NCBI RefSeq assembly: GCF_052425735.1
Contig: NC_135760.1
Location: forward strand, 29,388,001 to 29,452,000
Source: Oculina patagonica
Taxonomy: Eukaryota
Direction of reading: 5' to 3'
DNA length: 64,000 nucleotides
This document shows, piece by piece, positions 15,103-49,200 of this stretch; position 1 is the first letter of the stretch, and each line of letters begins with the position of its first letter. A program made the translations under genes and the position numbers. The notes under the pieces were generated by a model. The model saw only the letters and a list, made by a program, of their open reading frames with translations. It did no database searches and was not told the origin of the DNA.

Positions 15103-16124
15103 CCAAAACTGCTAGAACGTTAACGGTTCCGGCCATTCTCTTGCGTCAACAAGGGATTTATGTTTCACAAGTAACAAAATCAAGTACAGGCACGAATACA
15201 AACTCACCACCCAAAGTCACCCGCCCACCTGCTATTATAAGTACTTTTGTTTCTCAAGTTAACGAATCCTAAAAAAAAACCGACATAGTCTTAAGCTCTT
15301 TAGATCCCAACTTTCTGGAAAGAATAAGAGAACCAAAATAAAGAAAGTGCTTCCAGTTAGATCTTTTAGACTAAAAAACTTCTGAAGTTTAATTCAGCAG
15401 ATGATTTGTTATCAGTCAATAGTTATTGTCTGTGGTGAATAGGCTGTTCTTCATGATCACGACAATGAATAACAAAAGCAGTAATGGAATATCAACAAAT
15501 GTTTAATAAATTGCCGATCGTTATGGCATTACACCTTTAAATTAAGAAAAGCATGTCATTCACTTGACTACAGCCTTAAAATAAGTAGGCCATGCCGTCA
15601 CTAGCAATAGAAGACAGTCTTGGGTCAAACATGATGGATGAAGTGGTTCATGAAGTAGAATGTGCTGCATCAAATAGCCTGCAAATTAGGGGCCCTGGCC
15701 GAGATGATTTTCAGCCCGGTTTCAGCACGAATGATCAGAGCACGAATGATCTTGATTACCTTTTTCGGCAATTTGGTGGTTAAATTTTTTGCACTTATGC
15801 ATCTGGATGGATTACTTTACCTCTACATCCTATTTAGAAGGAGTAGCATCGATTTTTTTCGTCGGATATTGTGCTCGGAAGAGAAATTTAATGCTGGCCC
15901 GCTTAGCCGGGCTGGCCCAGTGAACGCGATTACATGGAAAATTTTCATCCCGGCTAGCCGAGATCCCGGCATCGCGATACCGGGATCTCGGCTAACCGGA
16001 CTGGCCCGGTTGTCATGTAATCGCAAAGTTGATTTTTGTTGCGTTTAACAGACGTGCCGAGATCTCGGCAATCCGAGCCAGCCCGGCTCATGTAATCAGG
16101 CCCTGAGCACACCGGCTCATTAAA

Positions 16125-17186
16125 GAGGGTCCTGAAGGGGTAAAATGGGAACTGGGATTTGCCTATATTTTCACTGGGAAAATGGGATTTAGGTCACTGG
16201 GACTAGGATTCCGAAACAAAAAATGGGAATGGGAAGCGTGCCAGTACATGACTAAACCAGCATATTTTGCGCTCTATAATGATATGTTCTTAAAGTCCGG
16301 CACTAAATAGTTAAAACGCTGAAAACTCTGAAACAAAACGACCGCACTGCACTAGTGTCCATCAACTGGTCTCGATCAATTTTCGTGTAAGTGATGAAGT
16401 TACTCAGCGGAACAGCTATGACTGAGGATCGGCACAAATGGAATATTTAAAAGAAGTGACTGCAAGTTGTTGTCAGTCAGGGTAGTGGTAGGTATGGGAT
16501 AAAAAACTTGATAGCTTTAGTTAAAGCTACAAAAAAAAAAAATTATTATTCTCTACAAGACAAATGATAACTATCCCTTCTGTGACCCAGGTGCGAAAAG
16601 AAAGTCCAGGATAACTTGCATGTGCATGCTTTTAAAAAACAAACCAATAAAAAACGACAGAGACGTGTGGCATTTCTTACATGTAACGTGTGCGTAAGGG
16701 TAAAAATAGTTCGCTAAAATGAAAAATTCAACTATGTGACTAAAGCGCGCGATCTGCAAGAAAAAATATTGTAACCTTTGTCTAAAGCCGTTATTAAAAG
16801 AATAGGTACTAAATCCACAAATACTAAATTTCTGAATTTATCATCTCTGCGCGTGCAATCCCGTGCATGTCCAAATGTTCTGTGGAATATGGTTTGGCTC
16901 CCCCCCTTTTTTGTAAGGGGGGTGGGTGGATGGGAGGACGGATTTCAGTGCAAGTTACTCTGGACTCGCTCTTCCTGCACCTGGGTTCAATCCCTATATA
17001 GGGCACCGAAGAGAAAGTTCAGGGAGTGTACTACATTTAGGACAATAAAAAACAAAACAGATATAATGCACTTGAGACCAGATTTTCCACACACTGGAAA
17101 TTTCACTGCTGGGACTGGGATTTAGACAAAAAATAGGCTGGGAAATGGGATTTGGTACCCCCCCCCCCCCCCCCTTCAGGACCCTC
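16125..17186. mobile_element. Non-autonomous DNA transposon with 6-bp TSD
   Basis: TIR gagggtcctgaagggg / ccccttcaggaccctc; attaaa duplicated at 16119-16124 and 17187-17192. Confidence 0.75.
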
Positions 17187-17652: not shown

Positions 17653-18427
17653 TTAAAATCGTTTCGTCAGAACACGGATGAACGGCGTCTTGGCATCACT
17701 TCCATCATAGATGCAACTCGTCTGCTTCTGGGTTTCATTTGATCATCTCTTGCCTTCTGCTGCAGATTGGTAGCGTTAAGGGGCTTTTCTGTGCTCGGTT
17801 TGTTCTCACGTGGTTTACGTTGTGTCAACACTGTTTGTTGTTTAAGGCGTCTGTCACTCGTTCCTTTTTTCAGTGAGGTTCTTCATCGTCTTGTTCCAGG
17901 ATCTGTCAGCGGGGTGTGTGCACGCTAGGAATGAAAGAAACTGCTCGCAGTCCTGGCCTGTGGATCATGGACTCATCTTTAAACGCAGTCCGTCCTCCAC
18001 TTCTCTCGGTTTGCTTTACAGCATCATTTTGACGCGATACGGACAGTTTGGTTGTTACCCTCTTAGCTTGCCGAGGTTTTCGTTGTTGGCCTTGCGGGCT
18101 TGTACATTGTGAGACTTGATGCTGTGGGTCTATGTGGCAATGTACATCAGTTTGTTTCGTTTGCTGGGGAAGAGCAACACGAACCAACTTGCGTCGTGGC
18201 CGTGACTGTCGGGTTTGTCGTTCATTAACTGGTAGCAAATGAGTTGAGTAGGTCTTGGAACCATTGGACGAAGGATTTTCATGGTCCTTCTTGAACGAAG
18301 AATTGGAGGCACATCTAGGTGGTTGTTGTTGCTCAGGTAGTATTGTTGCACCAAAAATGCTTCTATTTCTCCTTTGAAAAAATTCACATAACTCCATCAT
18401 CGAGAGTGGTTTGGATTTTCGACTCAT
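17653..18427 (-). pseudogene. Orphan basic-ORF family (MSRKS...), copy 1, interrupted
   Basis: MSRKSKPLSMMELCEFFQRRN start at 18427; premature stop at 17906; homology to the other copies continues to ~17653. Confidence 0.6.
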
Positions 18428-18604
18428 TTTGGGGTACAATTGTTCTCTGGTCAGTTATGTCAAGAGAATAATAGTTGTAATATGTTTTGGATGCTTCTTA
18501 TAATCTTAATTTCAACACAAACACGTCATCTTCTTTAAGGAGTGTCTCGTTTCTGATGTCACCGAAAACAACTGCCAATGTAATTAATGGTTTCAGTTTA
18601 TTTT

Positions 18605-19075
18605 CCAGCGTCAGTAACATTTCGTTACTTTTGGCTACGCTATTTGCCTTTACTTAATTACTTACGCAAGAAAATAAACAAAAAACATTTACTGTAACTA
18701 AGCAATCAGTCGAAATTTCAGAAATATTTTGTTGCTAACGTCAGCAACGTTTCGTCAATTTAGGCCGCGCCTTTTGCTTTTACCACATAGCAACCAACTA
18801 TTTAATTACTTACGCAAGAAAATAAACAAAAAACATTTACTGTAACTTAGCAATCAGTCGAAAGTTCAGTAATATTTTGTTACAAACGTCAGTAACATTT
18901 CTTTACTTTAGGCCGCGCCTTTTGCTTTTACCACATGGCAGCCAACTATTTAATTACTTACGCAAGAAAGCAAACAAAAAATATTTACTGTAACTTAGCA
19001 ATCAGTCGGAATTTCAGTTATGTTACTGACGTCAATAACGTTTTGTCACTTTGGGCTGCGCCTTTTGCTCAAACC
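18605..19075. repeat. ~148-bp tandem repeat array 1 (bZIP-motif array), ~3 units
   Basis: Unit ccacatagcaaccaactatttaattacttacgcaagaaaataaac...gttactgacgtcagtaac...gcgccttttgctttta; starts at 18783 and 18931 are 148 bp apart. Confidence 0.9.
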
Positions 19076-19292
19076 ACTTTCTCAAGGGCTAAAGTGATGG
19101 GTTGGAATCCACCACATGGTTTGTGCAAGAACTCTTGTGCTTGAGTTTCCAAGGTTTTGCTGAGTCCGTTCTTCCTCTGCAGTCATCAGTGCATTTGCCG
19201 AGTTAGGTCTCTTTGCTTTGCCTTGTTAGCAGTGGAGTTTGGATTTGCCTTCGAATACCAACTTTGACTTATTAGGAAACTCTTGGTCTCGT

Positions 19293-19300
19293 ATAATAAC

Positions 19301-19340
<40 letters not shown>

Positions 19341-23404: not shown

Positions 23405-23566
23405 NNNNNNNNNNNNNNNNNNNNNNNNNNNNNNNNNNNNNNNNNNNNNNNNNNNNNNNNNNNNNNNNNNNNNNNNNNNNNNNNNNNNNNNNNNNNNNNN
23501 NNNNNNNNNNNNNNNNNNNNNNNNNNNNNNNNNNNNNNNNNNNNNNNNNNNNNNNNNNNNNNNNNN
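23405..23566. other. Assembly gap (N run)
   Basis: 162 Ns after an AAT-rich run. Confidence 1.
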
Positions 23567-23974
23567 ATCATTAAAAAATACAAGCATCGATAAAAAGATA
23601 AAGAATTAAAAAGCAGCTGGCATCCTTATATAAAAAAGTCAATAGAATGTCTTTGTATATGTAATAATTTTTTAAAAAAACCCTTTAATAACAACATCTA
23701 AGATAATTCTCTGTGGCGCAAAACTATTTACAATAAAAGATTCTATAATACAGTCGTTAAAAGAAAAGAAAAATATGTTATACAAAAGTAAAAGAAAGCG
23801 AACACTATCAATAGAATAATAAAATTCCAGTAAAAATTGAATATCAAACTGGATATCAAAATGTAGTAGTAACTGAATATCAAAACCTAAAGTCCTGCAA
23901 GTCCTCTTTCAATGTCAAAGTCCATCTAATTGATGTTGAGATTTATTCTCCTCGGTTACCGTTACCGTAGGATA

Positions 23975-24262
23975 CGCCTTTCATTTTAACCACATAGCAA
24001 CCAACTATTTAATTACTTACGCAAGGAAATAAACAAAAATATTTACTGTAACTAAGAAATCAGTCAAAATTTCAGTAATATTTTGTTGCTAACGTCAGTA
24101 ACATTTCGTTACTTCAGTATGCGCCTTTTGCTTTTGCTACATAACAACCATTTCATTACTAATGCAAGAAAATAAGCGTAAAACACGTATTGTAATTAAG
24201 CAATCAGTCAAAATTTCAGTAATGTTTTGTTCCTGACGTCAATATTTTGTCACTTTGGGCCG
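23975..24262. repeat. ~148-bp repeat array 2, ~2 units
   Basis: Same unit as array 1; followed by the junction gggccgtgtggatagaaaaa, also seen at 27124. Confidence 0.85.
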
Positions 24263-25067
24263 TGTGGATAGAAAAATTAGAAATTTCTTCCAACACTTTT
24301 CTGTTTAATCTAATATATGACGTTTAGTATTGTATGACTTCCAGCGGTGAAAATGTTATGAAGTTACAAATTAACCAGTTGAGTTTATCATCAGTTTAAA
24401 GTCGTTGGAAGTTATTGTGCGTAAGATATTTTCAAGGTAGGAGAATGACTACCAGAGGAAATGGTGGAATATCAACAAAATGTTTAATAACTTGTCGATC
24501 GTTATAACATGGCAACTTGAACCAAAAAAACTTCATTCACATAACTATCAATATGGCCTTTCAGTGAGGCAATGTCGTCATAAACAATACATTCATATAA
24601 TACATCCAATAACACAAAAATAGCAATAAACGATGACAATACCGCAGGCAGTGGTAAGCTACTTTCAGGAGAAACTACCCCGACTTTTACTGACCAGGAC
24701 GACACGTGTAAACTGGCCAGGAATTTGCCACAGTAAAGTGTATCAAATTTATTTTAAAGACCGCGAGAATTCTTCTGATCATTACTTAATTTTAATTTCT
24801 ACAATAAAATACTGATGATACCAAATCAAGTTTTCAAAGCTAGGAGGCACCCGAAAAAGTTTCCATATTTCTCACTAGTGTTAACCGAAGATTAAAATTT
24901 TTTCACTCTGTAATTAAACCAGAACATGAGGAACCTTGCTACGCCTTATAAGGCCTTCGGGCCTAATTGTTAAGGTAATTTTTACATATAACATTTTTGT
25001 ATATTTCTGTATATTTTCGGTTAACTATAACCAAATGAGCACGCTATGTTTTTTTAGTAATGTCTCA

Positions 25068-25874
25068 TTAGAATCGTTTCCTCAGAACACGGATGAACGT
25101 TAGGTGTTGTTGAGCTGGGTCTGTCTGGATACACAGTCCTATTCTTCTATCAGTACACTGTGGCAGCTCACTGGTGTCTTGCTGGAAAGCTACACGGCGC
25201 TCTGGCATCACTTGATTCATAGCTGCAACTCGTCTGCTTCTGGGTTTCATTTGATCATCTCTCGCCTTCTGCTGCTGATTGGTAGCGTTTTGATGCTTTT
25301 CTGTGCTCGGTTTGTTGTCGCGTGGTTCATTTTGTTTTGTTACAGTCAGATGTTTGAGGTGTCTGCTACTTGTTCCACTCTTCACTGTGGTTTTTCTTCG
25401 TCTTGTTCCAGGATCTGCCAGCGCATGGGGTGCTAAGCACTGCCTGTGGATTATAGTGTCATCTTTCAACGCAGTCCGTTCTCCACTTCTCTCGGTTTTC
25501 TCTTCAGCAACAGTTTGAACCACTTTGGACGGTTGGGTTGTTTCCCTCCTGACATGCCGAGGTTTACGCTGTTGGCCTTGCGGGTTTGTACATTGTGAGA
25601 CTTGACGCTGTGTAGCTCTGTGGCAACGGACATCAGTTTGTTTCATTTGCTGGGGAAGAACAACAAAAACCAACTTGCTAGGTGAACGTGACTGCCGGGT
25701 TTGTCGTTCATTAACTGATGGCAAATGAGTTGAATTCGTCTTGGAAATGTTGCAGGGAAGATTTCCATGGCCCTTTTTGAAGGAATGATTGGACGGACAT
25801 TTCGGTGGTTTTTGATGGTTCGGTGGTGTTTTTTCACCAAGAATGCGTCCATTTAGTTGGGATTTTCGACTCAT
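25068..25874 (-). CDS. Orphan basic disordered protein, copy 2 (268 aa, intronless)
   Basis: Open ORF MSRKS...FIRVLRKRF* with an in-frame deletion relative to copy 3. TATATAAAA lies ~80 nt upstream; TTACGTCA and TGACGC sites further upstream. Confidence 0.55.
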   Translation of the reverse strand: MSRKSQLNGRILGEKTPPNHQKPPKCPSNHSFKKGHGNLPCNISKTNSTHLPSVNERQTRQSRSPSKLVFVVLPQQMKQTDVRCHRATQRQVSQCTNPQGQQRKPRHVRRETTQPSKVVQTVAEEKTERSGERTALKDDTIIHRQCLAPHALADPGTRRRKTTVKSGTSSRHLKHLTVTKQNEPRDNKPSTEKHQNATNQQQKARDDQMKPRSRRVAAMNQVMPERRVAFQQDTSELPQCTDRRIGLCIQTDPAQQHLTFIRVLRKRF

Positions 25875-26254
25875 TTTGTGCGTGTAATTTGAAGTTCTTT
25901 GGTCAGTGATGTCAAGAGATTGTTAGTTGTAATGTGTTTTTGATGGTTTTTATATATTTTCATTTGAACACAAGCGCGTCATCTTCTTTCGTGTACGTCT
26001 CGCTTCTGACGTAACATCTCAAACAATTGCAACATTATTTTCTAAATATATATATGGTATTTTTAGAACCTTTTCAGTTCAAAAAGGTATACCGTATTTC
26101 AAACATGTACACATTTTATTGAATTCTCGGTTACTTTTTGCTGGAATTCTTTGCAGATCACATTTTTCTGATGTTTCTAAAAGTTCCTGATGACGATATT
26201 CACAATCGCTAGTATTTTATGACGTGAGTCTTGTGTTTTTCTTTTAAAGGTTTA

Positions 26255-27130
26255 CTGTATAGCAACCAACTGTTTGGCCATTTACGCAGATGATAAACAG
26301 AAGCATTTATTGTAACTAGGCAAGCAATCGAAATTTCACTGATATTTTTGATGTTGCCAGTAACATTTCGTTATATTAAGCTGCGCCTTTTGCTTTTATC
26401 ACACAGCAACGAACTATTTAATTACTTACGCAAGAAAATAAACAAAAAAACATTAACTGTAACTAAGCAATCAATCGAAATTTCAGTAATATTTTGTTGC
26501 TAACGTCAGTAACATTTCGTCACTTTTTAGGCTGCGCCCTTTACTTTGACCACATAGCAACCAACTATTTAATTACTTACGCAAGGAAATAAGCAAAAAA
26601 TATTAACCGTTACTAAGCAATCAGTCGAAACTTCTGAATGTTTTTTTATTGACGTCAGTAACTTCTCGTTACTTTGGGCTTCGCCTTTTGCTTAAACCCC
26701 TGGAAACCAACTATTTAATTACATAAAAGAAAAAACATTTACCGTCACCAGGTAATCTAACTGTAACTAAGCATCCAGTCGAATTAATTTTCAGAAATAT
26801 TTTGTTACTGACGTCAGTTACATTTCTTTTTTTAAGGCCGCGCTTTCTGCCTTTATCACATAGCAACGCAGTATTTACTTACTTACGCAAGAAAATAAAC
26901 AAAAAATATTTTCTGTAACTGAGCAGTCAGTCGAAATTTCAGCAATATTTTGTTGCTAACGTCAGTATCATTTCGTTACTTCAGGTTGCGCCTTTTGCCT
27001 TTACTACATAACAACGATTTCATTACTAAAGCAAGAAAATAAACGAAAAGCTTGTACTGTAATTAAGCAATCAGTCCAGATGCCAGTAACGTTTTGTTAC
27101 TGACGTCAATATTTTGTTACTTTGGGCCGT
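26255..27130. repeat. ~148-bp repeat array 3, ~6 units
   Basis: Repeated catagcaaccaactatttaattacttacgcaag / tgacgtcagt units. Confidence 0.9.
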
Positions 27131-28315
27131 GTGGATAGAAAAATATAATTTCTTCCAACACTTTTTTGTTTAATCTAATGTATGGCGTCTTAGTATTGTA
27201 TAACTTCCAGCGGTGAATATAAGAATGGGACATTCTTATTGGTCGAGAAGCTCGGTTTATGGCACTTTAGAATTCATCAATTATTTCTCTCGCGCGCGAT
27301 TGGTCTAAATCCGTCACGTGATGCAGCCAAACTGAAAATAACGAATTATATCCCTGTGATATTCCCCAGTTTTCGAACTTTGCGACTTTCGTTTGCACGT
27401 TTAGTTTTCAACCCGAGCTAACTGCTAAATGGAATTGACTTGAACATTTTGAACAGACTAACAATATTATGAACACCGACAGAATTTGACGTTTAAAACC
27501 TTTGAGAAAAGTTCTCCCAAAATGAGCAGCCATGTGTAAAAATAATTGAGGGATAATAAACAAAATAGCCTCCGTTTGGCGCGAAAATGTACACTAAATC
27601 CTCACTCGCTCAGTCACTCACTTATCCACCGACCTACCAACAATGTCGGGAATTTAAAACCTAAAATGTGCGCGGTTACGGCCGTTCTCGTACGTTGAGT
27701 CAAGATTTTTGTTTTCATAGGAATGCATTATCGAAAACCCCCGACATGGTTTGAGCATCAAAGGAATGTTTGTCTTTGACTTCGTGTCAGTAGCTACATA
27801 TGGGCAACGTCCATATAAATTCAAGCTTTTGTTGTTGTAACCTCGCTCGGTTGTTGTCACTAGGTACAGAATTAGCCTTGGGCACTTGGCTGAATTCAGA
27901 AATTCCTTGACCACAACAACACGTGTTGAACTGGCCGTGAATGCGCCACAGTAAAGTGTATCAAACTTATTTTAAAGACCGCAAGTATTCTTCTGATCAT
28001 TACTTAATTTTATTTTTTAAAATAAAATACTGCTGATACCAAATCAAGTTTTCAAAGCTAAGAGGCACCCGAAAAAGTTTCCATATTTCTCAGCAGTGTT
28101 AACCGAAGATTTAAATTTTTCCACTCTGTAATTAGAAAATAAAATATTTCAATTTATCAGAACACGAGGAACCTTGCTATGGCCTAATAAGGCCTTTGGG
28201 CCTAATTGTTAAGTTAATTTTTACATATAACATTCTAACATTTCTGTATATTTCTGTACATTTTCGGTTGACTATAACCAAATGAGCTAGCTATGTTTTT
28301 TTTAGTAATGTCTCA

Positions 28316-29164: not shown

Positions 29165-29564
29165 TTTTCATATATTTGATATTCTCTGTTCAGTTTTGTC
29201 AAGAGTTTGTTAGTTCGTATGTGTCTTTATGTGCTCTTCATATGTTTTAGTTTGAACACAAGCACGTCATTTTCTTTCGTGAACGTCTCGCTTGTGACGT
29301 AAGATCTCAAACAACAACAACAACAACAACATTATTTTCCAAATATATATGTTTTTAGAACCTTTTCAGTTCAAACGTAAACAGTAGTTCAAACTTTCAC
29401 CCACGTACACATTTTATTGAATTCTCGGTGTTTTTTTTGCTGTGTAATTCTTTGCAGATCACATTTTTCTGATGTTTCTAACATTTCGTGGTGACGATGT
29501 TCATATATTTTTATATATTTTCGCTAATATTTTATGACGTGAGTCTTGTGTTTTCCTCTTAAAT

Positions 29565-29900
29565 CTTTACCGCAAAATAAACAGAAGCATTTATTGTATC
29601 TAGGCAAGCGATCGAAATTTTTCTGATGTTTTTGGTACTGACGTCAGTAACATTTCGTCACTTTTAATTTTAGGCTGCGCCCTTTACTTTGATCACATAG
29701 CAACCAACTATTTAATTACGTACGCAACAAAATAAACGAAAAATATTTTCTGTAACTAAGCAATTAGTCGAAACTTCTGAATGTTTTGTTATTGACGTCA
29801 GTAACTTCTCGTTACTTTGGTTTCGCCGTTCGCTTAAACCCCTGGAAACCAACTATTTAATTACAGAAAAGAAAAAAACATCTACCGTCACCAGGCAATC
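29565..29900. repeat. ~148-bp repeat array 4, ~2 units
   Basis: Same unit, with tgacgtca cores at ~29639 and ~29793. Confidence 0.85.
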
Positions 29901-34200: not shown

Positions 34201-37200
34201 ACTATTTAATTACTTACGCAAGAAATTAAACAAAAAAAAACATTAAACTGTATCTAAGCAGTCAGTCGACATTTCAGTAATATTTTGTTACTGACGTCTG
34301 CCGCACTTGTTGCTTTTCCCACATAGCAACCATTTATTTAATTACTTACGCAAGAAAATAAACAAAAAAAATTACTGTAACTAAGCAATCAGTCAAAATT
34401 TCATTAATATTTTGTTATTGACGTTTGTCAGTAACATTTCGTCACTTAAGGCCGCGCTTTTTTCTTTTCCCACATAGCAACCAATTATTTAATTACTTAC
34501 GAAAGAAAATAAACAAAAACATTCACTGTAACTAAGCAATCAGTCGAAATTTCAGTAATATTTTGTTCCTAACGTCAGTCAAGTAAGACTTTTTTACTTT
34601 AACGATTTTAGCTTTTACAAAAATATTTACTGTAACTACCTCATTATAGGAAAATAACGTTCCATGAAATTAACGAGAATTTTAAAAATTGTCGTTAATT
34701 TAAGTCGCGTTAATTTTTGTCAGCGTTAATTTCCTTGACATTAATTAGGTGAAGCGTTGATTTCCGCGACATTAATTTCCATCCTGTCCAGGCATAGTCG
34801 ACTTTCTCTTTTCTGCAAACTGTATTTACTTGTATTTCGATCTTTACGATATTTCCAGTTCATGCCTGCTTTCAGAAGGACAGTTGGACATCTAACACAT
34901 CCTCTTCCTATGTTTTCGGCAAAAAAGTTCAATGTTGAAATATAATTTGTTCTTATTGTCGCCAGAAACTGCGCTTCCTTGTGTTAATCGAGTTAATTAC
35001 TTCATTTTTAAAATTTACCTCCTCTTTCGCGTTAATTTCCTTTATTTAGAAGTACACTCTTTTTTTCTATAGGAATAATGTTTTTTTCTGGCCCAGGCTG
35101 AATATTCTTATTTTTCTGTCGATGTTAGGTTGAAAGTATTGTTATGAATATTCTTAGATTATAGCCTGTGTCATTTCTGTTTGTGCTATATACCATACAT
35201 ATGTATTACATATACCGTTCATCGAACTAGCATCGGAAGTAGTGAGGAAAGGACCGAATTAGCCGTTCCCATGGGCAGGAATTGGGCAGGAATAATTAAG
35301 TAGGTGACGTCATAGTGCGTAAGTGACGTCATCAAAAATGGGGCGTAAATGACGTCATAAAATGGGGTGCAATCTAAAAATAGAAAAATTACATCATCGG
35401 TTGTAATCTAAAAATAGAAAAATTACATCATCGGGTGTAATCTAAAAATTGAAAAATTACGTCATTAGGGTGTAATCTAAAAATAAAAATTACATCATAT
35501 CGGAGGGTAACCCCGCCTTGACCAATAGCCATAAAAGAAGCTGCTTGTAGTTCAGTCTATTCTCAGAGTTTACACCGTTCAGATCACAATGTACAGCAGT
35601 TATAATCAATTCTTTCAAGAGGGTTATGGAAATATCATATTACCCGATGACAGTGGAGATGAAAGCGATGATGAGAGCTCACAGGAAAGTGAACAGTCAT
35701 TTAGTCAAGATTCTCAATCGAGCGAAGAAATAGACTCTTCCCAAGAACAAATGGAGCATATAGATCCCTGGTCGCGCATTCAAGATGAAGTCACTAGTCG
35801 TCACGAAGCCAAGCTCGAAACTCTGATAAACGAGTATGAACAACATGGAGATGTGTCTGAAGTGGCCCGTGTTAAGGCTGAAAATGCTCTGCTACCAGTA
35901 TACAGGAAGGAGCTGAGAAAAGTTCTTTTGGAGTATTTACAGTGGATGCATGCAATGAAGAAAGATTCGACCTTCCGTAAAGTGATAGAGACCAAAAATG
36001 AATTGAAAGATACAGAGGGATATGATTGGTTAGAATCGACAGAACTCGCTATCGATAAGCGAAAATTCTTACTCAATCGGTTGTTTGTCAAACAAACTGT
36101 TCCCGAACACTAAGTGAACTGTGCCTGTTAATCTTTTCTGGTGACACCTCTGTCAATGTTTTTAATAATCAATAAACGTATTTTAAAAGAGAAAAAACCT
36201 GTTTGTTCCTTCTTGTGTCTCGCGGTGCGCAACTTGTCTATATAAACGCCTATAGATGCTAATTTCTTAAGCAAACTCCACCAAGTTTATACCGTAATTC
36301 GCTTAAATGCTCATACGCGTTCTCTACCGTTTGAATTAAGATAAAACCAAACATGTGAAACATAGGTTTACAAGTCAAAAAAGTTGTACATTGATCAAAT
36401 TTTTTTCACAAAATCGGTTCACTGAGCTGGTCTTACAATTTATTTTACTCGTAACTGCTCAATAACTCCATATTGCCAATGTAGTATTGCCGTATTGGCC
36501 GCTACGAATTTTTTGCTGTTTGTAATAATTGCTATTTGATTTTCTTGGTTGCTCTTTGTCACTCAACTGGTTAAATGATTTATTGATCTTATGAACTTAA
36601 CGTAATAAGAAATTTTGAAATGGAAAACTTTTAGAAAGTTTTGACAGTAAGAAAGTTTACTTTAAAGAAATGTAAATGAACTGTTGACAGGTTTGAGTGT
36701 GAATTTTTCGCTCCGATAATAACCCTTGGGAAAAGCATGTTAGTAATGCCTTTGTGTTAAGCGAAACCCCTAATTCTGGAAAAGTTTAATGAATTTTTAT
36801 GAAGTAAATAATAAGAGTTTTTTAAAGGAAATAAACTGAAGAAAATCACTTAATTTCCTCTTTTAATACACTGTTATTTATACAATAGCCGTTGACATTA
36901 CATTCTTTTAAACAAAGATTGCAAAAACAGACTTAAACCTATATGTCCGTGTCATCCAACAGCAAATGTTTATGCAAAAACATTACAGAGAAAGCCACCG
37001 TGGATGTTGAAGTGTTGTTATTTTAGACCGTTTGCTAGTCTTGTCTGTTTTTCGAATGCTTTTACTTCTGTTTTTCAATAAATCCTTTGATTTTCTTGGT
37101 GTGGATAACTGGTAGTTAATGTCAATGCCTTGTTGTTGAATAGACGGAGGTATGGTACACGCTTTAAGTTTTTGGCTGTTCTCAGTGTTTTGATAGATGA

Positions 37201-40200
37201 TTACTTTAACTTTAGGTTGTAGTTTTGCTTCTTGTAGCCACTTTCTTCTTTGATTGTGATCCAGCTGATGAACATTAGTAAGATGGTTAGATAATTTCAC
37301 GAGATATTTTGCTCCACATCCCGGAACCGGACAGTCTCGGCAAACTCTTCTAACCATGTTAACGGCATGAAATATTGACGCAAATGAGAGAGTTTTGTTA
37401 ATATCCTTGTGTTATATAGACGCTACTGAAGGTCAAAAAGGACAAAATGAGGTCAAAAAGGACAAAATAAGGACAACAAGGACAAAACAAGGACTAAAAG
37501 GACAAAAGGAGACACGAGGGACATTTAAGCTATATGTTTCGCTGCAAACGCGCGTGGAGAACGCGCGTGGAGAGACGCGTGCATGACATTCAATAAAAGT
37601 TTTTTTTCTTATCTACGTAACTGATCACTGATAAAAAACCAAAATAATTAATAATTTAATGATAAAGGAAATCTCAAATTCCCGTTTAATGTATATTCCC
37701 AGGAAAGATAGCAATATGTCTACTGTTCTTGTTTTTCTTTCGCTCATATTAGCGTATTCCAACGCCTGCTTAGAGGGAAAATGTCGGTGCTATGAAGCGT
37801 TGGAGCTTATCGACTGTTCTCACATTGGTCTGTATTCGATGCCACATGCAAAGTCTATCATGGTAAACTACACTTCAATTTTACTGCGTGGTAACAATCT
37901 TCGAAACCTCAATCTAACCGCTATTTTGGAAGTGTTCCCGCGACTTGTACTTCTTGATTTGAGAGAAAACAATAAGCTATTATGCGATGATTTACAACAA
38001 TTCCACAACTTTAAGCCGATTATTATAATAACAAAGGCGCTCTAGGCAATTACTACAGCATGTGGAGATGGAATTGACAATGTTAAGCACTGATCATGAT
38101 GAGGAGATCATTTTCTCTCGCACAACGGAGATGTGGATCACTCTTGGAGCTTATGCAATCACACACAAATGTAATTAACGAAATCGTATTTCAATAAACA
38201 ATGAAACGGAAACAACAGTCTCTGTCATGTTTGTGTTCCAGAAACAAAACCGAACAAAACCTTTATCTGTGAACTACATATTCACATCTCCGTTGTGCGA
38301 GAGATGTGAATATGTAGTTCACAGATAAAGGTTTTGTTCGGTTTTGTTTCTGGAACACAAACATGACAGAGACTGTTGTTTCCGTTTCATTGTTTATTGA
38401 AATACGATTTCGTTAATTACATTTGTGTGTGATTGCATAAGCTCCAAGAGTGATCCACATCTCCGTTGTGCGAGAGAAAATGATCTCCTCATCATGATCA
38501 GTGCTTAACATTGTCAATTCCATCTCCACATGCTGTAGTAATTGCCTAGAGCGCCTTTGTTATTATAATAATCGGCTTAAAGTTGTGGAATTGTTGTAAA
38601 TCATCGCATAATAGCTTATTGTTTTCTCTCAAATCAAGAAGTACAAGTCGCGGGAACACTTCCAAAATAGCGGTTAGATTGAGGTTTCGAAGATTGTTAC
38701 CACGCAGTAAAATTGAAGTGTAGTTTACCATGATAGACTTTGCATGTGGCATCGAATACAGACCAATGTGAGAACAGTCGATAAGCTCCAACGCTTCATA
38801 GCACCGACATTTTCCCTCTAAGCAGGCGTTGGAATACGCTAATATGAGCGAAAGAAAAACAAGAACAGTAGACATATTGCTATCTTTCCTGGGAATATAC
38901 ATTAAACGGGAATTTGAGATTTCCTTTATCATTAAATTATTAATTATTTTGGTTTTTTATCAGTGATCAGTTACGTAGATAAGAAAAAAACTTTTATTGA
39001 ATGTCATGCACGCGCTCTCTCCACGCGCGTTCTCCACGCGCGTTTGCAGCGAAACATATAGCTTAAATGTCCCTCGTGTCTCCTTTTGTCCTTTTAGTCC
39101 TTGTTTTGTCCTTGTTGTCCTTATTTTGTCCTTTTTGACCTCATTTTGTCCTTTTTGACCTTCAGTAGCGTCTATATAACACAAGGATATTAACAAAACT
39201 CTCTCATTTGCGTCAATATTTCATGCCGTTAACATGGTTAGAAGAGTTTGCCGAGACTGTCCGGTTCCGGGATGTGGAGCAAAATATCTCGTGAAATTAT
39301 CTAACCATCTTACTAATGTTCATCAGCTGGATCACAATCAAAGAAGAAAGTGGCTACAAGAAGCAAAACTACAACCTAAAGTTAAAGTAATCATCTATCA
39401 AAACACTGAGAACAGCCAAAAACTTAAAGCGTGTACCATACCTCCGTCTATTCAACAACAAGGCATTGACATTAACTACCAGTTATCCACACCAAGAAAA
39501 TCAAAGGATTTATTGAAAAACAGAAGTAAAAGCATTCGAAAAACAGACAAGACTAGCAAACGGTCTAAAATAACAACACTTCAACATCCACGGTGGCTTT
39601 CTCTGTAATGTTTTTGCATAAACATTTGCTGTTGGATGACACGGACATATAGGTTTAAGTCTGTTTTTGCAATCTTTGTTTAAAAGAATGTAATGTCAAC
39701 GGCTATTGTATAAATAACAGTGTATTAAAAGAGGAAATTAAGTGATTTTCTTCAGTTTATTTCCTTTAAAAAACTCTTATTATTTACTTCATAAAAATTC
39801 ATTAAACTTTTCCAGAATTAGGGGTTTCGCTTAACACAAAGGCATTACTAACATGCTTTTCCCAAGGGTTATTATCGGAGCGAAAAATTCACACTCAAAC
39901 CTGTCAACAGTTCATTTACATTTCTTTAAAGTAAACTTTCTTACTGTCAAAACTTTCTAAAAGTTTTCCATTTCAAAATTTCTTATTACGTTAAGTTCAT
40001 AAGATCAATAAATCATTTAACCAGTTGAGTGACAAAGAGCAACCAAGAAAATCAAATAGCAATTATTACAAACAGCAAAAAATTCGTAGCGGCCAATACG
40101 GCAATACTACATTGGCAATATGGAGTTATTGAGCAGTTACGAGTAAAATAAATTGTAAGACCAGCTCAGTGAACCGATTTTGTGAAAAAAATTTGATCAA

Positions 40201-43200
40201 TGTACAACTTTTTTGACTTGTAAACCTATGTTTCACATGTTTGGTTTTATCTTAATTCAAACGGTAGAGAACGCGTATGAGCATTTAAGCGAATTACGGT
40301 ATAAACTTGGTGGAGTTTGCTTAAGAAATTAGCATCTATAGGCGTTTATATAGACAAGTTGCGCACCGCGAGACACAAGAAGGAACAAACAGGTTTTTTC
40401 TCTTTTAAAATACGTTTATTGATTATTAAAAACATTGACAGAGGTGTCACCAGAAAAGATTAACAGGCACAGTTCACTTAGTGTTCGGGAACAGTTTGTT
40501 TGACAAACAACCGATTGAGTAAGAATTTTCGCTTATCGATAGCGAGTTCTGTCGATTCTAACCAATCATATCCCTCTGTATCTTTCAATTCATTTTTGGT
40601 CTCTATCACTTTACGGAAGGTCGAATCTTTCTTCATTGCATGCATCCACTGTAAATACTCCAAAAGAACTTTTCTCAGCTCCTTCCTGTATACTGGTAGC
40701 AGAGCATTTTCAGCCTTAACACGGGCCACTTCAGACACATCTCCATGTTGTTCATACTCGTTTATCAGAGTTTCGAGCTTGGCTTCGTGACGACTAGTGA
40801 CTTCATCTTGAATGCGCGACCAGGGATCTATATGCTCCATTTGTTCTTGGGAAGAGTCTATTTCTTCGCTCGATTGAGAATCTTGACTAAATGACTGTTC
40901 ACTTTCCTGTGAGCTCTCATCATCGCTTTCATCTCCACTGTCATCGGGTAATATGATATTTCCATAACCCTCTTGAAAGAATTGATTATAACTGCTGTAC
41001 ATTGTGATCTGAACGGTGTAAACTCTGAGAATAGACTGAACTACAAGCAGCTTCTTTTATGGCTATTGGTCAAGGCGGGGTTACCCTCCGATATGATGTA
41101 ATTTTTATTTTTAGATTACACCCTAATGACGTAATTTTTCAATTTTTAGATTACACCCGATGATGTAATTTTTCTATTTTTAGATTACAACCGATGATGT
41201 AATTTTTCTATTTTTAGATTGCACCCCATTTTATGACGTCATTTACGCCCCATTTTTGATGACGTCACTTACGCACTATGACGTCACCTACTTAATTATT
41301 CCTGCCCAATTCCTGCCCATGGGAACGGCTAATTCGGTCCTTTCCTCACTACTATCGGACATTTGGCTCATGCAGGTTTTTATCGTTTTATTGGCTAGTT
41401 TTGCCGTTTAGAGAAAGGACGAATTTTATACGATCTAGATAAAACATATAATTTTATTGTATTTACATATTTTCAACACACAAAATTATATTCCTTTCCA
41501 ATCTCAGCCTCGGGTTTATTCTTAAAATATTCTTAAAATTTCGCAAAGAAAAAAAAAGGTGCAGGTTTGCCTCCAATTCGCGTTAATTTAATAAGGAAAG
41601 CAATCAACAGCAAACACTAAAAATTATGGCAAATAACACTAAACACTAAACCCCATTCAGACTCTCACATTACTATGGCCTTGCAGAAATGCTATGCCGT
41701 CATGAACAAAAAACATCAATATATTACATCCATTTACACAAAAATAGCGATAAACGATGATAATAACTGCAGACTATGGTAGGGTATCACTCATCATGAA
41801 GGAAAAAACTACCCTGACTTGTCACTGACCACAATGGCAAGTGTTGAACTTGCCGTGAATGTGCCACAGTAAAGTGTATCAAATTTATTTTGAAGACCGC
41901 GAGTTTTCTTCTGATCATTACTTAATTCTTATTTCTACAATAAAATATTGCTGATACCAAATCAAGTTTTCAAAACTAGGAGGCACCCAAAAAATTAACA
42001 TTTTTCCACTCTCTAACTTACAAATGAAATATTTCAATTTACCAGAACACTTTTTTAATGAATTTGCCAACCCTACTTACAATACTAAAACGGAATGCAA
42101 TTTATTACAACACACTTCTTATTATACTTACCCAGCTACTTGTACTACAATACAGCTACCTTACTCCAATTACAATACTTATCATCGCTACTTACATCAT
42201 TTACAACACAATTACACAATTACATCTACAGTCACTTCCACTTCCGTACAATTTCGTTCCGTGCTGCGGATAATAATATAATTAACGCAGGATGAAATAG
42301 CTCACATTACATTTTATATGACTAAATTTAAATACTTTGTTTTAAAGAATAATTATTTGGCTACTCAGAGGAGTTACATAAAAAAACTTTGTAAACTCTC
42401 TGTATATTTTTCCTTTTAAGATTGTGGCTGTCTTCATGATTTTTTTATTTCTTTCTTTTGATGTTTTGAATTTACCAAAACACGCACAACTTTGCTACGG
42501 CCTAATAAGGCTCGTAAGCCTAATTGTTTAGTTAATTTTTATATATAAAATTTATGTATATTTTTGTACATTTTCCGATTACGATACCCAACTGAACTAG
42601 CTATGTTTTTTAGTAATGTCTCATTAGAATCGTTTCCTCAGAACACGGATGAACGTTAGGTGTTGTTGAGCTGGGTCTGTCTGGATACACAGTCCTATTC
42701 TTCTATCAGTACACTGTGGCAGCTCACTGGTGTCTTGCTGGAAAGCAAGACGGCGCTCTGGCATTACTTGATTCATAGCTCCAACTCGTCTGCTTCTGGG
42801 TTTCATTTGATCATCTCTCGCCTTCTGCTGCTGATTGGTAGCGTTTTGATGCTTTTCTGTGCTCGGTTTGTTGTCGCGTGGTTCATTTTGTTTTGACACT
42901 GTTAGTTGTTTGAGGTGTCTGCCACTTGTTCCACTCTTCACTGTGGTTTTTCTTCGTCTTGTTCCAGGATCTGCCAACGCATGGGGTGCTAAGCACTGCC
43001 TGTGAATCATACTGCCATCTTTCAACGCAATCCGTCCTCCACTTCTCTCGGTTTTCTCTTCAACATGGTTTGGACGCGCTACGGACTGTTTCGTTGTTAC
43101 CCTTTTGGCTTGCTGAGGTTTTCGTTGTTGGCCTTGCGGGTTTGTACATTGTGAGACTTGACGCTGTGTAGCTCTGTGGCAGTGGACATCAGTTTGTTTC

Positions 43201-46200
43201 ATCTTCTGGGGAAGAGCAACACGAACTAACTTGCTTGGTGACCGTGACTGCCGGGTTTGTCGTTCATTAACTGGTGGCAAATGCGTTGAATGCGATTTGG
43301 AATTACTGAAAGACGAAGGATTTTTATAGCCCTTCTTGAACGGAGGATTGGAGGCAACTTTCGGTGGTTCTTGCTCTTCAACAAGAAAGCGTCCATTTCT
43401 TCTTTGGTAAACTTCACACGACTCTCTCGTCGACAGTGGTTTGGATTTTCGACTCATTTTTGGGGTACGTTTGTTGTTGTACAATTGATGTTCTCTGTTC
43501 AGTTCTGTCAAGAGATTGTTAGTTCTAATGTGTTTTTCGTGGTTCCTATATATTCTCATTTGAACACAAGCACGTCACCTTCTTTGGTGTACGTGTCGCT
43601 TCTGACGTAACATCGCTCTCAATTGCACCATTATTCGCTAGTCTTTTTCGACGTGAGTCTTGTGTTTTCCTCGGTTACCGCATGGCAGCCAACTGTTTAG
43701 CAATTTACGCAAAAATAAACAGAAGCATTTCTTGTAACTAGGCAAGCGACCGAAATTTCACTAATATGTTTTTATACTGACGTCAGAAACATTTCGTTAC
43801 TTAAGGCGGCGCCTTTTACTTTTACCACATAGCAACCAAATATTTAATAACTTACGCAAGAAAATATACGAAAAATATTTACCGTTACTAAGCAATCAAT
43901 CAAAACGTCAGTTATGTTTTGTTATTGACGTCAGTAACTTCTCGTTACTTTGGCTTCGCCTTTTGCTTAAACCCCTGGAAACCAACTATTTAATTTCATA
44001 AAAGAAAAAACATTTACCGTCACCAGGTAACTGATCAATCCTTTAATTGTTCGCTCGATCTGGTTATTAATAAACGGTCGTCTTTTTATTTATTCACTCA
44101 CTGATCCATCCAACCACCCACCCGCCCGTCCGTCGACCTTTCGTTGATTGGATGGTTTGGATGGTTCGTATGTCCTCGTTCGTTCGTTCGTACGTTCGGT
44201 CGGTCGGTCTTTGGTTCTTTGCTTCGTCGGTCGGTCGGTCGGTTGGTTGGTTGGTTCGGTCGGTCGGTCGTTCTTTGCTTCGTTGGTTGGTTCGTTCTTT
44301 TTTGCGTTCGTCGATGGAGCTAGCCAGTCAGTAGTCATTCAGAGGATCAGTCCATCACTGTGTACTTACCCAATGATCTGCAGTGGTGTCCCTTTACGCC
44401 GCGTGTTTTTTACAGCAGCCGCTTTAACAACAGTGTCTTCAGTGATACTTGTTGTGGTGGCCGCAGGCAACAAAAAGAAATAGCTGGAAACCTTAGAAAT
44501 AAAAACAATGTGTAACCTTTTATACGGGTAAAGCGCGTTCATTGATTAAGGTTTTGCTGCAGAACATGCTTCAATGTTTGGGCGTAAAAAACAAACACAA
44601 CGACAAACAAATGGCAAAGAAACAACACCATACACAATACACACACAAACAGCAAAACTATGTTTTTATCATTACTGTTGCAAAGTAAGATTCTGGTTCC
44701 TTCCTCTCGCACAGGATCAATGTGGCCTCCCGATACACGAATTCAGTCTTATGAGTGAAAAAGGATAAAGGTACTACAGTATCTACACTGCAACTGCTCC
44801 CCTTGACCTCCCCTTGTACGTTGATGGAAAGTGTAACAGAAGCTACTGTTGAATAACTGACTGACTGATTGAAAAATCTGTGCTTCTTTATCTGTACGCA
44901 CTTCTACATGTAATCTATATTCAAATTGTTTATGGATGACGCCCATATTTAATTGTTTTGCCAACATTTTTCAAGTTAGCCGTTCGCAATTTGTTTCAAT
45001 ATTCCTCATTAATTGTGACTTAAGAGGTAACACTTCAAGTAGATAATAAAGATTTTACTAAATCTTACTATTTTCTCAAGTGATAAAGCCTTAGAGTTTA
45101 CATGACGTCTCTCCAGAGGCACCAATCGATCAACGTAGTTAGCCAGGAGCATGTCAGTAACATGCATTCGAAGCCACGTGGGACTACACGTCTCCAAAAA
45201 CCGCTTTAGTGTAACCTCGCTTTCATGGAGCCGGCCACAGGCCAGATACAGTTCGGTCACAAAGGTTCGCGAGCGTTCACTCAACCTGGTGGCCAGATCT
45301 TCTTCGGTACACTTCATGGAAACGAGGTCACAAAGAATGAAGCATTTAGCTGCCATAGCAACAACACTTTGAAGAGTTTGCAAGGCGGTAATCTGAAGAA
45401 ACAAAAGTATCAACTTTAGATGCATTTTCCCGGGTGAAACCTGGGTCAACCTTCTTGCCTTGTTATGGTTTAGGAACGTACACACCGACATATTATATTC
45501 GCGATAAAATGTTTACGCCAACTGCGAGCTTCGGCCAATTTACTTGGTGAAGCTTCTGAACGCCATTCGGGATTCGTTTATATTTTTGTATACAAAATTT
45601 TTACAAAGAAATCACTGATATCACACACCTAGAGCAGGAAGTTTGGCAAGCTGACACGGATTTTATTTCACAATTGCAAACATTTTGGGAAAAAGTAAGA
45701 AGATTGCCATTATTTGTCAGACTTCCACGCATTGTACAGTCCCCTATGCGGCTGTTATTAGGGTCGGGGAGGACAGTTGGGTTGGGTCGGGGAGAAGCGT
45801 TCAGTGAAGACCCAAATTACGGCTTGAGGAACCCTAGCCGTGATTGAAAATGGAATGATTTTGGCTTCTGATAGGTCGGAGATCAAAAGATGGGGCGTGA
45901 AGAGGAAAATCTCGTCAGATCTTTTGTAAATAAAACTAAATCTAGATAAAGTTTGGTTGCATACATATGTTCAAACTATAATTTAAGAATTTTTTAACTT
46001 AACATTACATACTATACCGTATTCAGACCATCTACACACAGATAAGCAATCCATCTTAACGACAAGCTCTCACGGCTTTGCTTTCTTTCCGATTAATGAG
46101 CACATCGGACATTTGGCTCATGCAGGTTTTTATCGTTTTATTGGCTAGTTTTGCCGTTTAGAGAAAGGAGAATTTTATCGATCTAGATAAAACATATAAT

Positions 46201-49200
46201 TTTATTGTATTTCATATTTTCAACACACAAAATTATATTCCTTTCCAATCTCAGCCTCGGTTTATTCTTAAAATATTCTTAAAATTTCGCAAAGAAAAAA
46301 AAAGGTGCAGGTTTGCCTCCAATTCGCGTTAATTTAATAAGGAAAGCAATCAACAGCAAACACTAAAAATTATGGCAAATAACACTAAACACTAAACCCC
46401 ATTCAGACTCTCACATTACTATGGCCTTGCAGAAATGCTATGCCGTCATGAACAAAAAACATCAATATATTACATCCATTTACACAAAAATAGCGATAAA
46501 CGATGATAATAACTGCAGACTATGGTAGGGTATCACTCATCATGAAGGAAAAAACTACCCTGACTTGTCACTGACCACAATGGAAGTGTTGAACTTGCCG
46601 TGAATGTGCCACAGTAAAGTGTATCAAATTTATTTTGAAGACCGCGAGTTTTTTCTGATCATTACTTAATTCTTATTTCTACAATAAAATATTGCTGATA
46701 CCAAATCAAGTTTTCAAAACTAGGAGGCACCCAAAAAATTAACATTTTTCCACTCTCTAACTACAAATGAAATTTTCAATTACCAGAACACTTTTTTAAT
46801 GAATTTGCCAACCCTACTTACAATACTAAAACGGAATGCAATTTATTACAACACACTTCTTATTATACTTACCCAGCTACTTGTACTACAATACAGCTAC
46901 CTTACTCCAATTACAATACTTATCATCGCTACTTACATCATTTACAACACAATTACACAATTACATCTACAGTCACTTCCACTTCCGTACAATTTCGTTC
47001 CTGCTCGGATAATAATATAATTAACGCAGGATGAAATAGCTCACATTCATTTTTGATAAATTTAAATACTTTTTTTAAGAATAATTTTCTACTCAGAGGA
47101 GTTACATAAAAAAATTTAAACTCTCTTTTTTTCCTTTTAAGATTTGGCTTCTTCATGTTTTTTTTTTCTTTCTTTTATTTTAATTTACCAAAACACGCAC
47201 AACTTTGCTACGGCCTAATAAGGCTCGTAAGCCTAATTTTTAGTTAATTTTTATATATAAAATTTATTATTTTTTTACATTTTCCGATTACGATACCCAA
47301 CTGAACTAGCTATTTTTTAGTAATGTCTCATTAGAATCGTTTCCTAGAACACGGATGAACGTTAGGTGTTGTTGAGCTGGGTCTTCTGGATACACAGTCT
47401 ATCTCTATAGTACACTTGGCAGCTCACTGGTTCTTGCTGGAAAGCAAGACGGCGCTCTGGCATTACTTGATTCATAGCTCCAACTCGTCTGCTTCTGGGT
47501 TTCATTTGATCATCTCTCGCCTTCTCTGCTGATTGGTAGCTTGATGCTTTTCTTCTCGGTTTTTGTCGCGTGGTTCATTTTGTTTTGACACTGTTAGTTG
47601 TTTGAGGTGTCTGCCACTTGTTCCACTCTTCACTGTGGTTTTTCTTCGTCTTGTTCCAGGATCTGCCAACGCATGGGGTGCTACACTGCCTGTGAATCAA
47701 CTGCCATCTTCCGCAATCCGTCCTCCACTTCTCTCGGTTTTCTCTTCAACATGGTTTGGACGCGCTACGGACTTTTCGTTGTTACCCTTTTGGCTTGCTG
47801 AGGTTTTCGTTGTTGGCCTTGCGGGTTTGTACATGTGAGACTTGACGCTGTGTAGCTCTGTGGAGTGACATCAGTTTTTTCATCTTCTGGGGAAGAGCAA
47901 CAGAACTAACTTGGTGACCGTGACTGCCGGGTTTGTCGTTCATTAACTGGTGGCAAATGCGTTGAATGCGATTTGAATTACTGAAAGACGAAGGATTTTA
48001 TAGCCCTTCTTGAACGGAGGATTGGAGGCAACTTTCGGTGGTTCTTGCTCTTCAACAAGAAAGCGTCCATTTCTTCTTTGTAAACTTCACACGACTCTCT
48101 CGTCGAAGTGGTTTGATTCGACTATTTTTGGGGTCGTTTTTTTGTACAATTGATGTTCTCTTTCAGTTCTGTCAAGAGATTGTTATTCTAATTGTTTTTC
48201 GTGTTCCTATATATTCTCATTTGAACACAAGCACGTCACCTTCTTTGGTGTACGTGTCGCTCTGACGTAACATCGCTCTCAATTGCACCATTATTCGCTA
48301 GTCTTTTTCGACGTGAGTCTTGTGTTTTCCTCGGTTACCGCATGGCAGCCAACTGTTTAGCAATTTACGCAAAAATAAACAGAAGCATTTCTTGTAACTA
48401 GGCAAGCGACCGAAATTTCACTAATATGTTTTTATACTGACGTCAGAAACATTTCGTTACTTAAGGCGGCGCCTTTTACTTTTACCACATAGCAACCAAA
48501 TATTTAATAACTTACGCAAGAAAATATACGAAAAATATTTACCGTTACTAACAATCAATCAAAACGTCAGTTATGTTTTGTTATTGACGTCAGTAACTTC
48601 TCGTTACTTTGGCTTCGCCTTTTGCTTAAACCCCTGGAAACCAACTATTTAATTTCATAAAAAGAAAAAACATTTACCGTCACCAGGTAACTGATCAATC
48701 CTTTAATTGTTCGCTCGATCTGGTTATTAATAAACGGTCGTCTTTTTATTTATTCACTCACTGATCCATCCAACCACCCACCCGCCCGTCCGTCGACCTT
48801 TCGTTGATTGGATGGTTTGGATGTTCGTATGTCCTCGTTCGTTCGTTCGTACGTTCGGTCGGTCGGTCTTTGTTCTTTGCTTCGTCGGTCGGTCGGTCGG
48901 TTGGTTGGTTGGTTCGGTCGGTCGTCGTTCTTGCTTCGTTGGTTGGTTCGTTCTTTTTTGCGTTCGTCGATGGAGCTAGCCAGTCAGTAGTCATCAGAGG
49001 ATCAGTCCATCACTGTGTACTACCCAATGATCTGCAGTGGTGTCCCTTTACGCCGCGTGTTTTTTACAGCAGCCGCTTTAACAACAGTGTCTTCAGTGAT
49101 ACTTGTTGTGGTGGCCGCAGGCAACAAAAAGAAATAGCTGGAAACCTTAGAAATAAAAACAATGTGTAACCTTTTATACGGGTAAAGCGCGTTCATTGAT

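Follow-up and report, generated by a model that had tools for sequence, protein, structure and literature searches.

Copies and assembly of the cluster

We analysed a 64,000-nucleotide (nt) stretch of the Oculina patagonica genome (contig NC_135760.1, positions 29,388,001 to 29,452,000; hereafter the window, with positions counted from its first letter), which has a G+C content of ~37% and two N gaps (8291-8538 and 23405-23566), and which carries a cluster of related open reading frames (ORFs) for a basic protein. Using the 282-amino-acid ORF as a tblastn query we found exactly six homologous places in the window, all on the minus strand, with starts at 18427, 25853 (ATG at 25874), 29164, 33488, 43457 and 48106. 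These are the six co-oriented copies that an earlier note on this DNA, made from the letters alone, had listed, the genes lying on the minus strand so that its 'starts' are the high coordinates. Its statement that three copies are fully open was likewise borne out. Copy 2 (25068-25874, 268 amino acids) and copy 3 (28316-29164, 282 amino acids) were recovered from the ORF list, tblastn and alignment, and copy 5 (42624-43457) encodes 277 amino acids from a conserved Met, its mechanical ORF extending to 43559 and 311 amino acids. Substitutions and in-frame indels are the only differences among these three. Copy 1 (17656-18427) was detected by tblastn as pieces in three frames and by alignment, which revealed a 26-nt insertion and a 97-nt deletion that takes most of the C-terminal motif. 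Copy 4 (33107-33488; tblastn and alignment) is a 5' fragment with a 71-nt internal deletion, truncated after approximately residue 151. Both carry many substitutions and, judged from this, are real pseudogenes.

The copies share a layout of 3' flank, ORF, TATA/CRE-like promoter (CRE, cAMP response element) and 148-bp array, as the earlier note had described, and self-comparison also upheld its head-to-tail units, with boundaries at 24352-27130 and 27131-29992. Conserved 3' blocks lie, again on the minus strand, at 24552-24876 for copy 2, where both exact 3' motifs of the earlier note are found together with AATAAA, at 27926-28092 for copy 3 and at 41674-42010 for copy 5. The two motifs occur exactly five and four times, against 0.15 and 0 expected, and the block that holds both, with its AATAAA, is kept across species at a mean column identity of 80%. 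The assembly gap at 23405-23566 lies outside every copy, promoter and array; its flanks are AT-rich and showed no similarity to the ORF, promoter or array, and the ORFs that cross it are only meaningless X-filled ones. The nearest array unit, in an array without an ORF, is 386 nt to the right of the gap, with unrelated sequence beyond, and none of the copies described here relies on continuity across it.

We next compared how the copies differ from each other. Copies 1-5 have mutually diverged by 11-25%, with ~17-18 substitutions for every indel event, a ratio in keeping with real paralogs. The sixth place, 'copy 6' (47345-48125, with its promoter at 48207-48270 and its array at 48363-48647), sits on the minus strand inside a duplicated unit (unit b, 46104-50740) of the segment at 41354-46103 (unit a). 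Alignment of the two units gave 56 gap events in unit b (114 nt) and one in unit a; substitutions >10 nt away from a gap number only 11, while natural paralog pairs in the window have 5-6 gap events and 91-106 substitutions at that distance. The deletions in unit b are 1-6 nt long and densest over the ORF, and copy 5 matches copies 2 and 3 at the positions deleted in copy 6. Furthermore, the 45.1-45.8 kb block is single-copy in two other corals, at the loci that we term L001 and L007. This one-directional pattern probably reflects an unpolished long-read consensus or a false duplication, not natural decay.

Immediately next to unit a there is a perfect 6.1-kb palindrome (35238-41353), with arms at 35238-37575/39016-41353 and 37596-38290/38301-38995 that are 100% complementary and a 10-nt centre. 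It mirrors three ORFs, of 174 amino acids, of 124 amino acids (zinc-finger-like) and of 128 amino acids (leucine-rich-repeat-like), and has no counterpart in L001. Two origins come into question for the palindrome, a fold-back error in the assembly and an inverted duplication of very recent date. The a/b duplication begins exactly where the palindrome ends (41353/41354). Given this coincidence, the one-directional deletions and the single block in two corals, 'copy 6' is probably not a separate gene and would be a consensus or assembly artefact.

The same observations could be taken to mean that the whole amplification is an artefact of repeat collapse or expansion: the differences of unit b from unit a are almost all deletions in one direction, the perfect palindrome ends at the start of that duplication, and there is an N gap inside the cluster. 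This is nevertheless very unlikely, as the divergence of copies 1-5 has the substitution-rich character of real paralogs and the independent assembly of another coral (L001) has three tandem copies in the same place. Only copy 6 and the order and orientation over 35.2-50.7 kb are in doubt, and that interval should be checked first when copies are counted in this assembly.

Protein sequence and selection

The proteins that the copies encode have isoelectric points (pI) of 10.6-11.7, contain ~20% K+R (19-22%) and are rich in Q, S, T and P. In an alignment of 33 members the ORF is open throughout, with lengths of 231-470 amino acids. AlphaFold2 run on this alignment gave a mean pLDDT (predicted local distance difference test) of 51.8, with confidence confined to two helices (residues 10-20 and 267-281) and no globular domain. 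Pfam searches with single proteins and with 17 alignment members returned scattered single-member chance matches only and no family, and a profile search against PDB sequences gave no match. The absence of a recognisable domain, which the earlier note had reported, therefore stands for all 17 members, and the disorder and pI predictions that it had suggested describe a strongly basic chain that is disordered apart from its terminal helices.

Conservation is concentrated at the ends of the protein. The last seven residues (columns 276-282) are identical in 33/33 members, the ~20 residues before them are nearly invariant, and R257 and R258 are also invariant columns. Likewise, the start position and an N-terminal motif are conserved, as is an Arg-Arg-Val-Ala-Ile/Phe-Gln motif, which is accompanied by an invariant Arg-Arg-x-Gly/Ala-Leu/Val-Cys that leads into the tail; the protein also has an RRRK cluster. 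The middle varies in length. Distant members hold one to three copies of a short Gln/Arg/Lys-rich motif, which is single in the window proteins and reaches three in P0020, P0024 and others, and in the Desmophyllum protein P0016 a Pro/Lys/Gln repeat of 11-12 residues recurs over a long stretch. From the alignment, the middle expands and contracts via internal repeats and evolves fast, and the constrained parts are the two short terminal helices and the Arg-Arg motifs.

These features bear on the suggestion that the protein is a sperm nuclear basic or chromatin-condensing protein, driven by CREM/CREB in gametogenesis. The high pI and the composition rich in S, T, P, Q, K and R would suit such a role, as would the CRE/TATA-type promoter described below, given that CREM drives spermatid basic-protein genes in mammals. 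However, a K+R content of only ~20% is far below that of protamine-like proteins, no H1 or protamine domain was matched, and what is conserved is not bulk charge but two terminal helices and RR motifs. We regard the suggestion as highly improbable.

We then assessed selection by the Nei-Gojobori method with bootstrap intervals, comparing the coding sequences of ten copies, a comparison that the earlier note had proposed. Whole-gene ratios of non-synonymous to synonymous substitution (dN/dS, omega) were 0.39-0.81 in all within-window and between-lineage pairs, with bootstrap intervals <1 for cross-species pairs, and fell to 0.06-0.44 over the last 26 codons. Synonymous divergence among the ten copies reached ~0.5-0.8. 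Selection on the middle of the protein is weak, and the L001 paralog pairs, which are at very low divergence, gave an omega of ~1. Taken together the substitution pattern is that of a coding gene in which short motifs are strongly constrained and the remainder only weakly.

A neutral origin, in which the ORFs are neutral or non-coding transcribed repeats with frames open by chance, would account for the omega values only moderately <1 in the middle and ~1 among the L001 paralogs, and for the decay of two of the five real copies. It would also fit the contigs that bear homologs, which gave no expression evidence: the short Logan, ENA and JGI contigs look genomic, with upstream arrays or stretches of flanking DNA and without poly-A, and do not inform on transcription. 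Against this origin are the open frame in 33/33 members, at the synonymous divergence reached among the ten copies, the invariant C-terminal residues with their low omega, the conserved start position and N-terminal motif, and the cross-species bootstrap intervals, which together leave it with very little probability.

A separate observation concerns the 3' ends of the intact copies. Over the last 42 codons of copies 2, 3 and 5 (25068-25193, 28316-28441 and 42624-42749) synonymous divergence between paralogs is 0-0.03, compared with 0.14-0.21 in the middle, which suggests gene conversion or a constraint at the nucleotide level, the pattern being inconsistent at larger distances.

Upstream sequences of the family genes

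To characterise the proximal upstream sequence we aligned 12 regions, from five window copies, L001 (two), L003, L004, L005, Desmophyllum and L007. These have a common order of TTACGTCAG, then ~25 nt later GATGACGTG, then TATATAA, followed by a conserved leader, and TTACGTCAG, GATGACGTG, TATATAA and CTCTTGAC are nearly invariant across the 12 regions, which come from at least five sources including Desmophyllum. A reading of GATGACGTG as an XBP1/ATF6-type stress element was considered and not adopted. In the window, and on the minus strand, the proximal promoter of copy 2 (25950-26014) contains TTACGTCAG, GATGACGCG and TATATAA, and that of copy 5 (43546-43610) contains TTACGTCAG, GGTGACGTG and TATATAG. 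Copy 3 has the CRE-like sites TTACGTCAC and AATGACGTG (29263-29302) and a weak TATA despite its intact ORF. The promoter sites are degraded in both pseudogenes, and in copy 1 (18459-18561), where this is partial, site A is mutated and there is no clear TATA. Among four more distant loci that could be judged, three have a TATA with an ACGTCA element upstream and the fourth, L006, has only a TTTACGTCG-type variant. A predicted CRE/TATA promoter, with a CRE-like site within ~100 nt upstream of the TATA, is in this comparison conserved among orthologs.

Further upstream lie the 148-bp arrays, all in the minus-strand orientation of the genes. Copy 1 has ~3 units (18591-19078; Tandem Repeats Finder (TRF) and nhmmer), copy 2 has ~6 units with three full CREs (26280-27131), and copies 3 (29572-29855) and 5 (43703-43988) each have two units with two full CREs. 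Upstream of copy 4 there are two arrays (33663-34077 and 34159-34584; TRF and nhmmer), and an orphan array of ~2.5 units (23952-24351) has no promoter or ORF downstream before the gap. The earlier note had described six copies, each with its array; an array does lie upstream of each, but the window holds eight in total, the extra ones being the orphan and the second array at copy 4 (34159-34584), and the sixth copy is the probable artefact discussed above.

Every 148-bp unit in the window, L001, L003, L004 and L005 is upstream of the ORF and in gene orientation. Each contains a palindromic CRE-type site and a TTGCGTAA-type site, which are among its best-conserved parts, with conservation otherwise fairly even along the 148 bp and no peak restricted to the CRE. 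The sequence TGACGTCA occurs 19 times in the window against 0.75 expected, 12 times in arrays and six in the palindrome, a count inflated by repetition as the units are not independent. Neither Rfam at gathering thresholds nor a tRNA scan returned anything in the whole window, so the unit is not a known RNA gene.

We also examined whether ORF and array always occur together. In a scan of JGI metagenome contigs a first, stricter array pattern gave no matches and a looser one gave three contigs, and in 3/3 a family ORF lies just downstream on the same strand. The unit is not present at the Desmophyllum, L006 and L007 (Tara) loci or in distant members, and the family therefore does not need it. 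The idea of a gene family travelling with its own array consequently holds at the window copies and in other corals, where array and ORF co-occur, but not for the family as a whole; and co-occurrence runs in one direction, from array to ORF, since the Desmophyllum, L006 and L007 ORFs are without an array. On these comparisons the array is a dedicated upstream element of one family subgroup, related to Oculina, and not a dispersed repeat. It is a putative enhancer.

Multimerised CRE enhancers are known from the immediate-early enhancer repeats of cytomegalovirus and the 21-bp repeats in the long terminal repeat of human T-lymphotropic virus 1 (HTLV-1). As in those, tandem units with a TGACGTCA-type site stand upstream of a TATA promoter, here in numbers of 2 to ~6. 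Unlike the viral repeats, each unit is as long as 148 bp, most of its length is conserved and the CRE makes up only a small part; the units form a cellular element, a putative enhancer confined to one gene family in a coral subgroup. As paralogs differ mainly in upstream unit number, the cluster could offer a natural series for the minisatellite as a putative dosage-setting enhancer.

Two further observations were made around the arrays. Short-period repeats ((GGGT)n, (TCGT)n and an 18-bp repeat) at 29960-30066, 44176-44297 and 48835-48953 adjoin, or lie ~200 nt beyond, the distal upstream ends of the arrays of copies 3, 5 and 6, and may mark breakpoints of the duplicated units. The 174-amino-acid ORF of the palindrome, which is acidic (35589-36113, mirrored at 40478-41002), has its own upstream CRE cluster at 35305-35498 (mirrored at 41093-41286), composed of three full CREs in a 26-bp repeat and four copies of a 34-bp repeat, and making it the second CRE-rich tandem-repeat promoter in the neighbourhood.

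Distribution, history and possible role

A word-based search recovered 21 relatives, and a profile hidden Markov model search of 1.84 billion protein representatives, cut at E = 0.001, gave 39 matches. The only named sources among the 39 are O. patagonica, Desmophyllum pertusum and a fish, the last through an Ig protein that matched spuriously; the others are ENA, Logan and JGI coral-type contigs, some of them from Tara Pacific coral metagenomes. The collection also has named Nematostella proteins, of which none matched. As a control we used SMYD4, the gene next to a distant member; the collection names very few corals for it, so missing names are uninformative, and the SMYD4 beside the distant member is 71% identical to that of Oculina and 45% to that of Nematostella. 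On these searches the family is so far restricted to stony-coral-type assemblies, in a collection that names few corals. A literature search for the tail motif gave no match, and no prior description of the family was found in it.

The position of the gene was also compared between corals. L007, a Tara coral metagenome contig, has a single member, 31% identical to copy 3, which lies between homologs of the window at 51.7 kb/45.1-45.4 kb and at 30.8-32.0 kb, the locus being collinear with the minus strand of the window. L001, with ~80% nucleotide identity, has upstream blocks in common with the window in addition to its tandem copies. A tree of intact coding sequences, which excludes copies 1, 4 and 6, places the window copies in one supported group and those of L001/L003 in another, so either the expansion is lineage-specific or the copies have been homogenised by conversion. 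With three intact and two decayed copies and the paralogs of each species clustering on the tree, the lineage-restricted family with birth-and-death evolution that the earlier note had proposed gains support. A species-level orphan it is not, as members are also found in Desmophyllum pertusum and many coral-type assemblies, those from Tara Pacific included. Near the cluster, a stretch of ~189 nt at 14914-15102 matches L001 19379-19566 in both orientations (90% and 80%) and is palindromic, with conservation in both corals; as a potential miniature inverted-repeat transposable element (MITE) it was not used as synteny evidence.

The units are repeated, co-oriented and have common flanks, two arrays have no adjacent ORF, and certain DNA transposons and Helitrons often have minisatellites inside them, all of which could point to a mobile or selfish non-autonomous transposon, repeatedly inserted with its ORF and internal tandem repeats. 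The window copies, however, are all local tandem units whose paralogs have diverged by 11-20% with natural substitution patterns, the same neighbour genes flank the family gene in the distant coral L007, and the array pattern was found only beside family ORFs. The profile search matched only this family, with no more than 39 cluster representatives among 1.84 billion proteins, there is no transposase, reverse transcriptase or other Pfam domain, and self-comparison found no inverted or long terminal repeats bounding the units, whose ends are blurred by the arrays, which would obscure any target-site duplications. Because of the conserved syntenic position, the small family and the lack of a transposon protein, a mobile element is exceedingly unlikely, and the 'unclassified selfish unit' offered in the earlier note was abandoned.

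We consider it reasonably likely that the window holds a coral-restricted tandem cluster of a single-exon gene family, encoding a basic, disordered protein, with its own CRE-like/TATA promoters and, in one subgroup, an upstream array. Under this explanation the ancestor would probably have had one gene between two conserved neighbour genes, and in the Oculina lineage segmental tandem duplication would have multiplied a unit composed of array, promoter, ORF and 3' block. Birth-and-death would then have left the three intact and two decayed copies, the sixth most likely being an assembly artefact. Each copy would be transcribed from its own TATA promoter, with bZIP factors of the CREB/ATF type acting on the two conserved CRE-like sites ~25-60 nt upstream of the TATA and the 148-bp minisatellite adding a CRE input that varies with unit copy number. 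The protein would act via its terminal helices as short docking motifs, and its charge and RRRK cluster make a nuclear site probable; the function that we favour, with low confidence, is that of a nuclear docking or adaptor protein working by its terminal motifs.

Several points weigh against this explanation. The middle of the protein is under weak selection and the L001 paralogs have an omega of ~1, the homolog-bearing contigs look genomic, and copy 3 combines an intact ORF with a weak TATA. The array is missing from Desmophyllum, L006, L007 and distant members, its units have no CRE-only peak of conservation, and the CRE counts are raised by repetition. The bZIP factors, the partners of the helices and the nuclear site are, furthermore, matters of inference only.

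Tandem clusters of lineage-specific genes are common in corals, according to two reports, which describe pervasive tandem duplications in coral genomes (PMC10236652) and many function-less genes in corals (PMC13044578). Like such coral 'dark' tandem families, the present one is local, head-to-tail and co-oriented, has intact and decayed members, has no homologs outside the lineage, and is annotated solely as 'hypothetical protein'. It is unlike them in general in that each unit has a conserved CRE/TATA promoter, to which one subgroup adds a 148-bp minisatellite with CREs. Coral 'dark' genes are a recognised obstacle to coral biology, and the invariant C-terminal helix, the conserved N-terminal helix and the conserved CRE-like/TATA promoter give this family experimental handles.

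A more specific role can be imagined, in which the proteins are CRE-induced, disordered inhibitors or buffers of the pseudosubstrate type for a basophilic kinase such as PKA. The pseudosubstrate consensus of PKI and the PKA R subunit is Arg-Arg-x-Ala/Gly-hydrophobic. Within the last 55 residues of the family proteins, conserved Arg-Arg-x-[Ala/Gly]-hydrophobic motifs occur two or three times, the two best conserved (columns 240-244 and 257-261) never have Ser/Thr at the central position, and the motifs adjoin an amphipathic helix in a protein whose promoter is cAMP-responsive in look. Unlike PKI, the family shows no sequence homology to it (no Pfam match at E up to 1) and has the helix C-terminal of the motif, where PKI has it N-terminal. 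One family subgroup lacks the first motif, and such short motifs are common in basic proteins, so we treat this role as quite improbable and as a lead only. If it were true, a promoter switched on by the same cAMP/CREB pathway would form a coral-specific negative-feedback module, its dosage tunable through the copy number of the gene and through how many CRE-bearing 148-bp units there are.

The deposited annotation of the locus was compared with the copies described above. Copy 5 matches the O. patagonica model ACROYT_G010986 in its C-terminal part at 307/311 positions, and the four mismatches fall at that model's exon junction. The model (42624-50740, minus strand, 481 amino acids) starts in the tail of copy 6, further takes a neighbour-gene exon (45009-45491) and continues into copy 5 across its 5' leader; by this comparison the deposited gene model for the locus is chimeric. 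An alternative in which the ORF is the last exon of the upstream neighbour, as in that model, was rejected, as copies 1-4 are without that exon and as the Met and N-terminal motif are conserved, with a conserved TATA promoter directly upstream. The segments at 45009-45491 (and 49662-50144) and at 30784-32030 are conserved exons of the two neighbour genes between which the family gene lies in other corals, with 77-81% nucleotide identity to L001 and L007. The 160- and 120-amino-acid ORFs of these neighbours gave no Pfam match, and the L007 counterpart of window positions 31832-32030 overlaps an ankyrin-repeat ORF.

Elsewhere in the window, exons of a SURP-domain gene of the splicing-factor type lie on the plus strand at 6918-10226, with two Surp modules and the first N gap (8291-8538) between them. 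Finally, a 373-nt inverted repeat pair of 98.7% identity (11865-12237 and 12983-13353), with its arms ~750 nt apart, may be a small foldback or MITE-like element.

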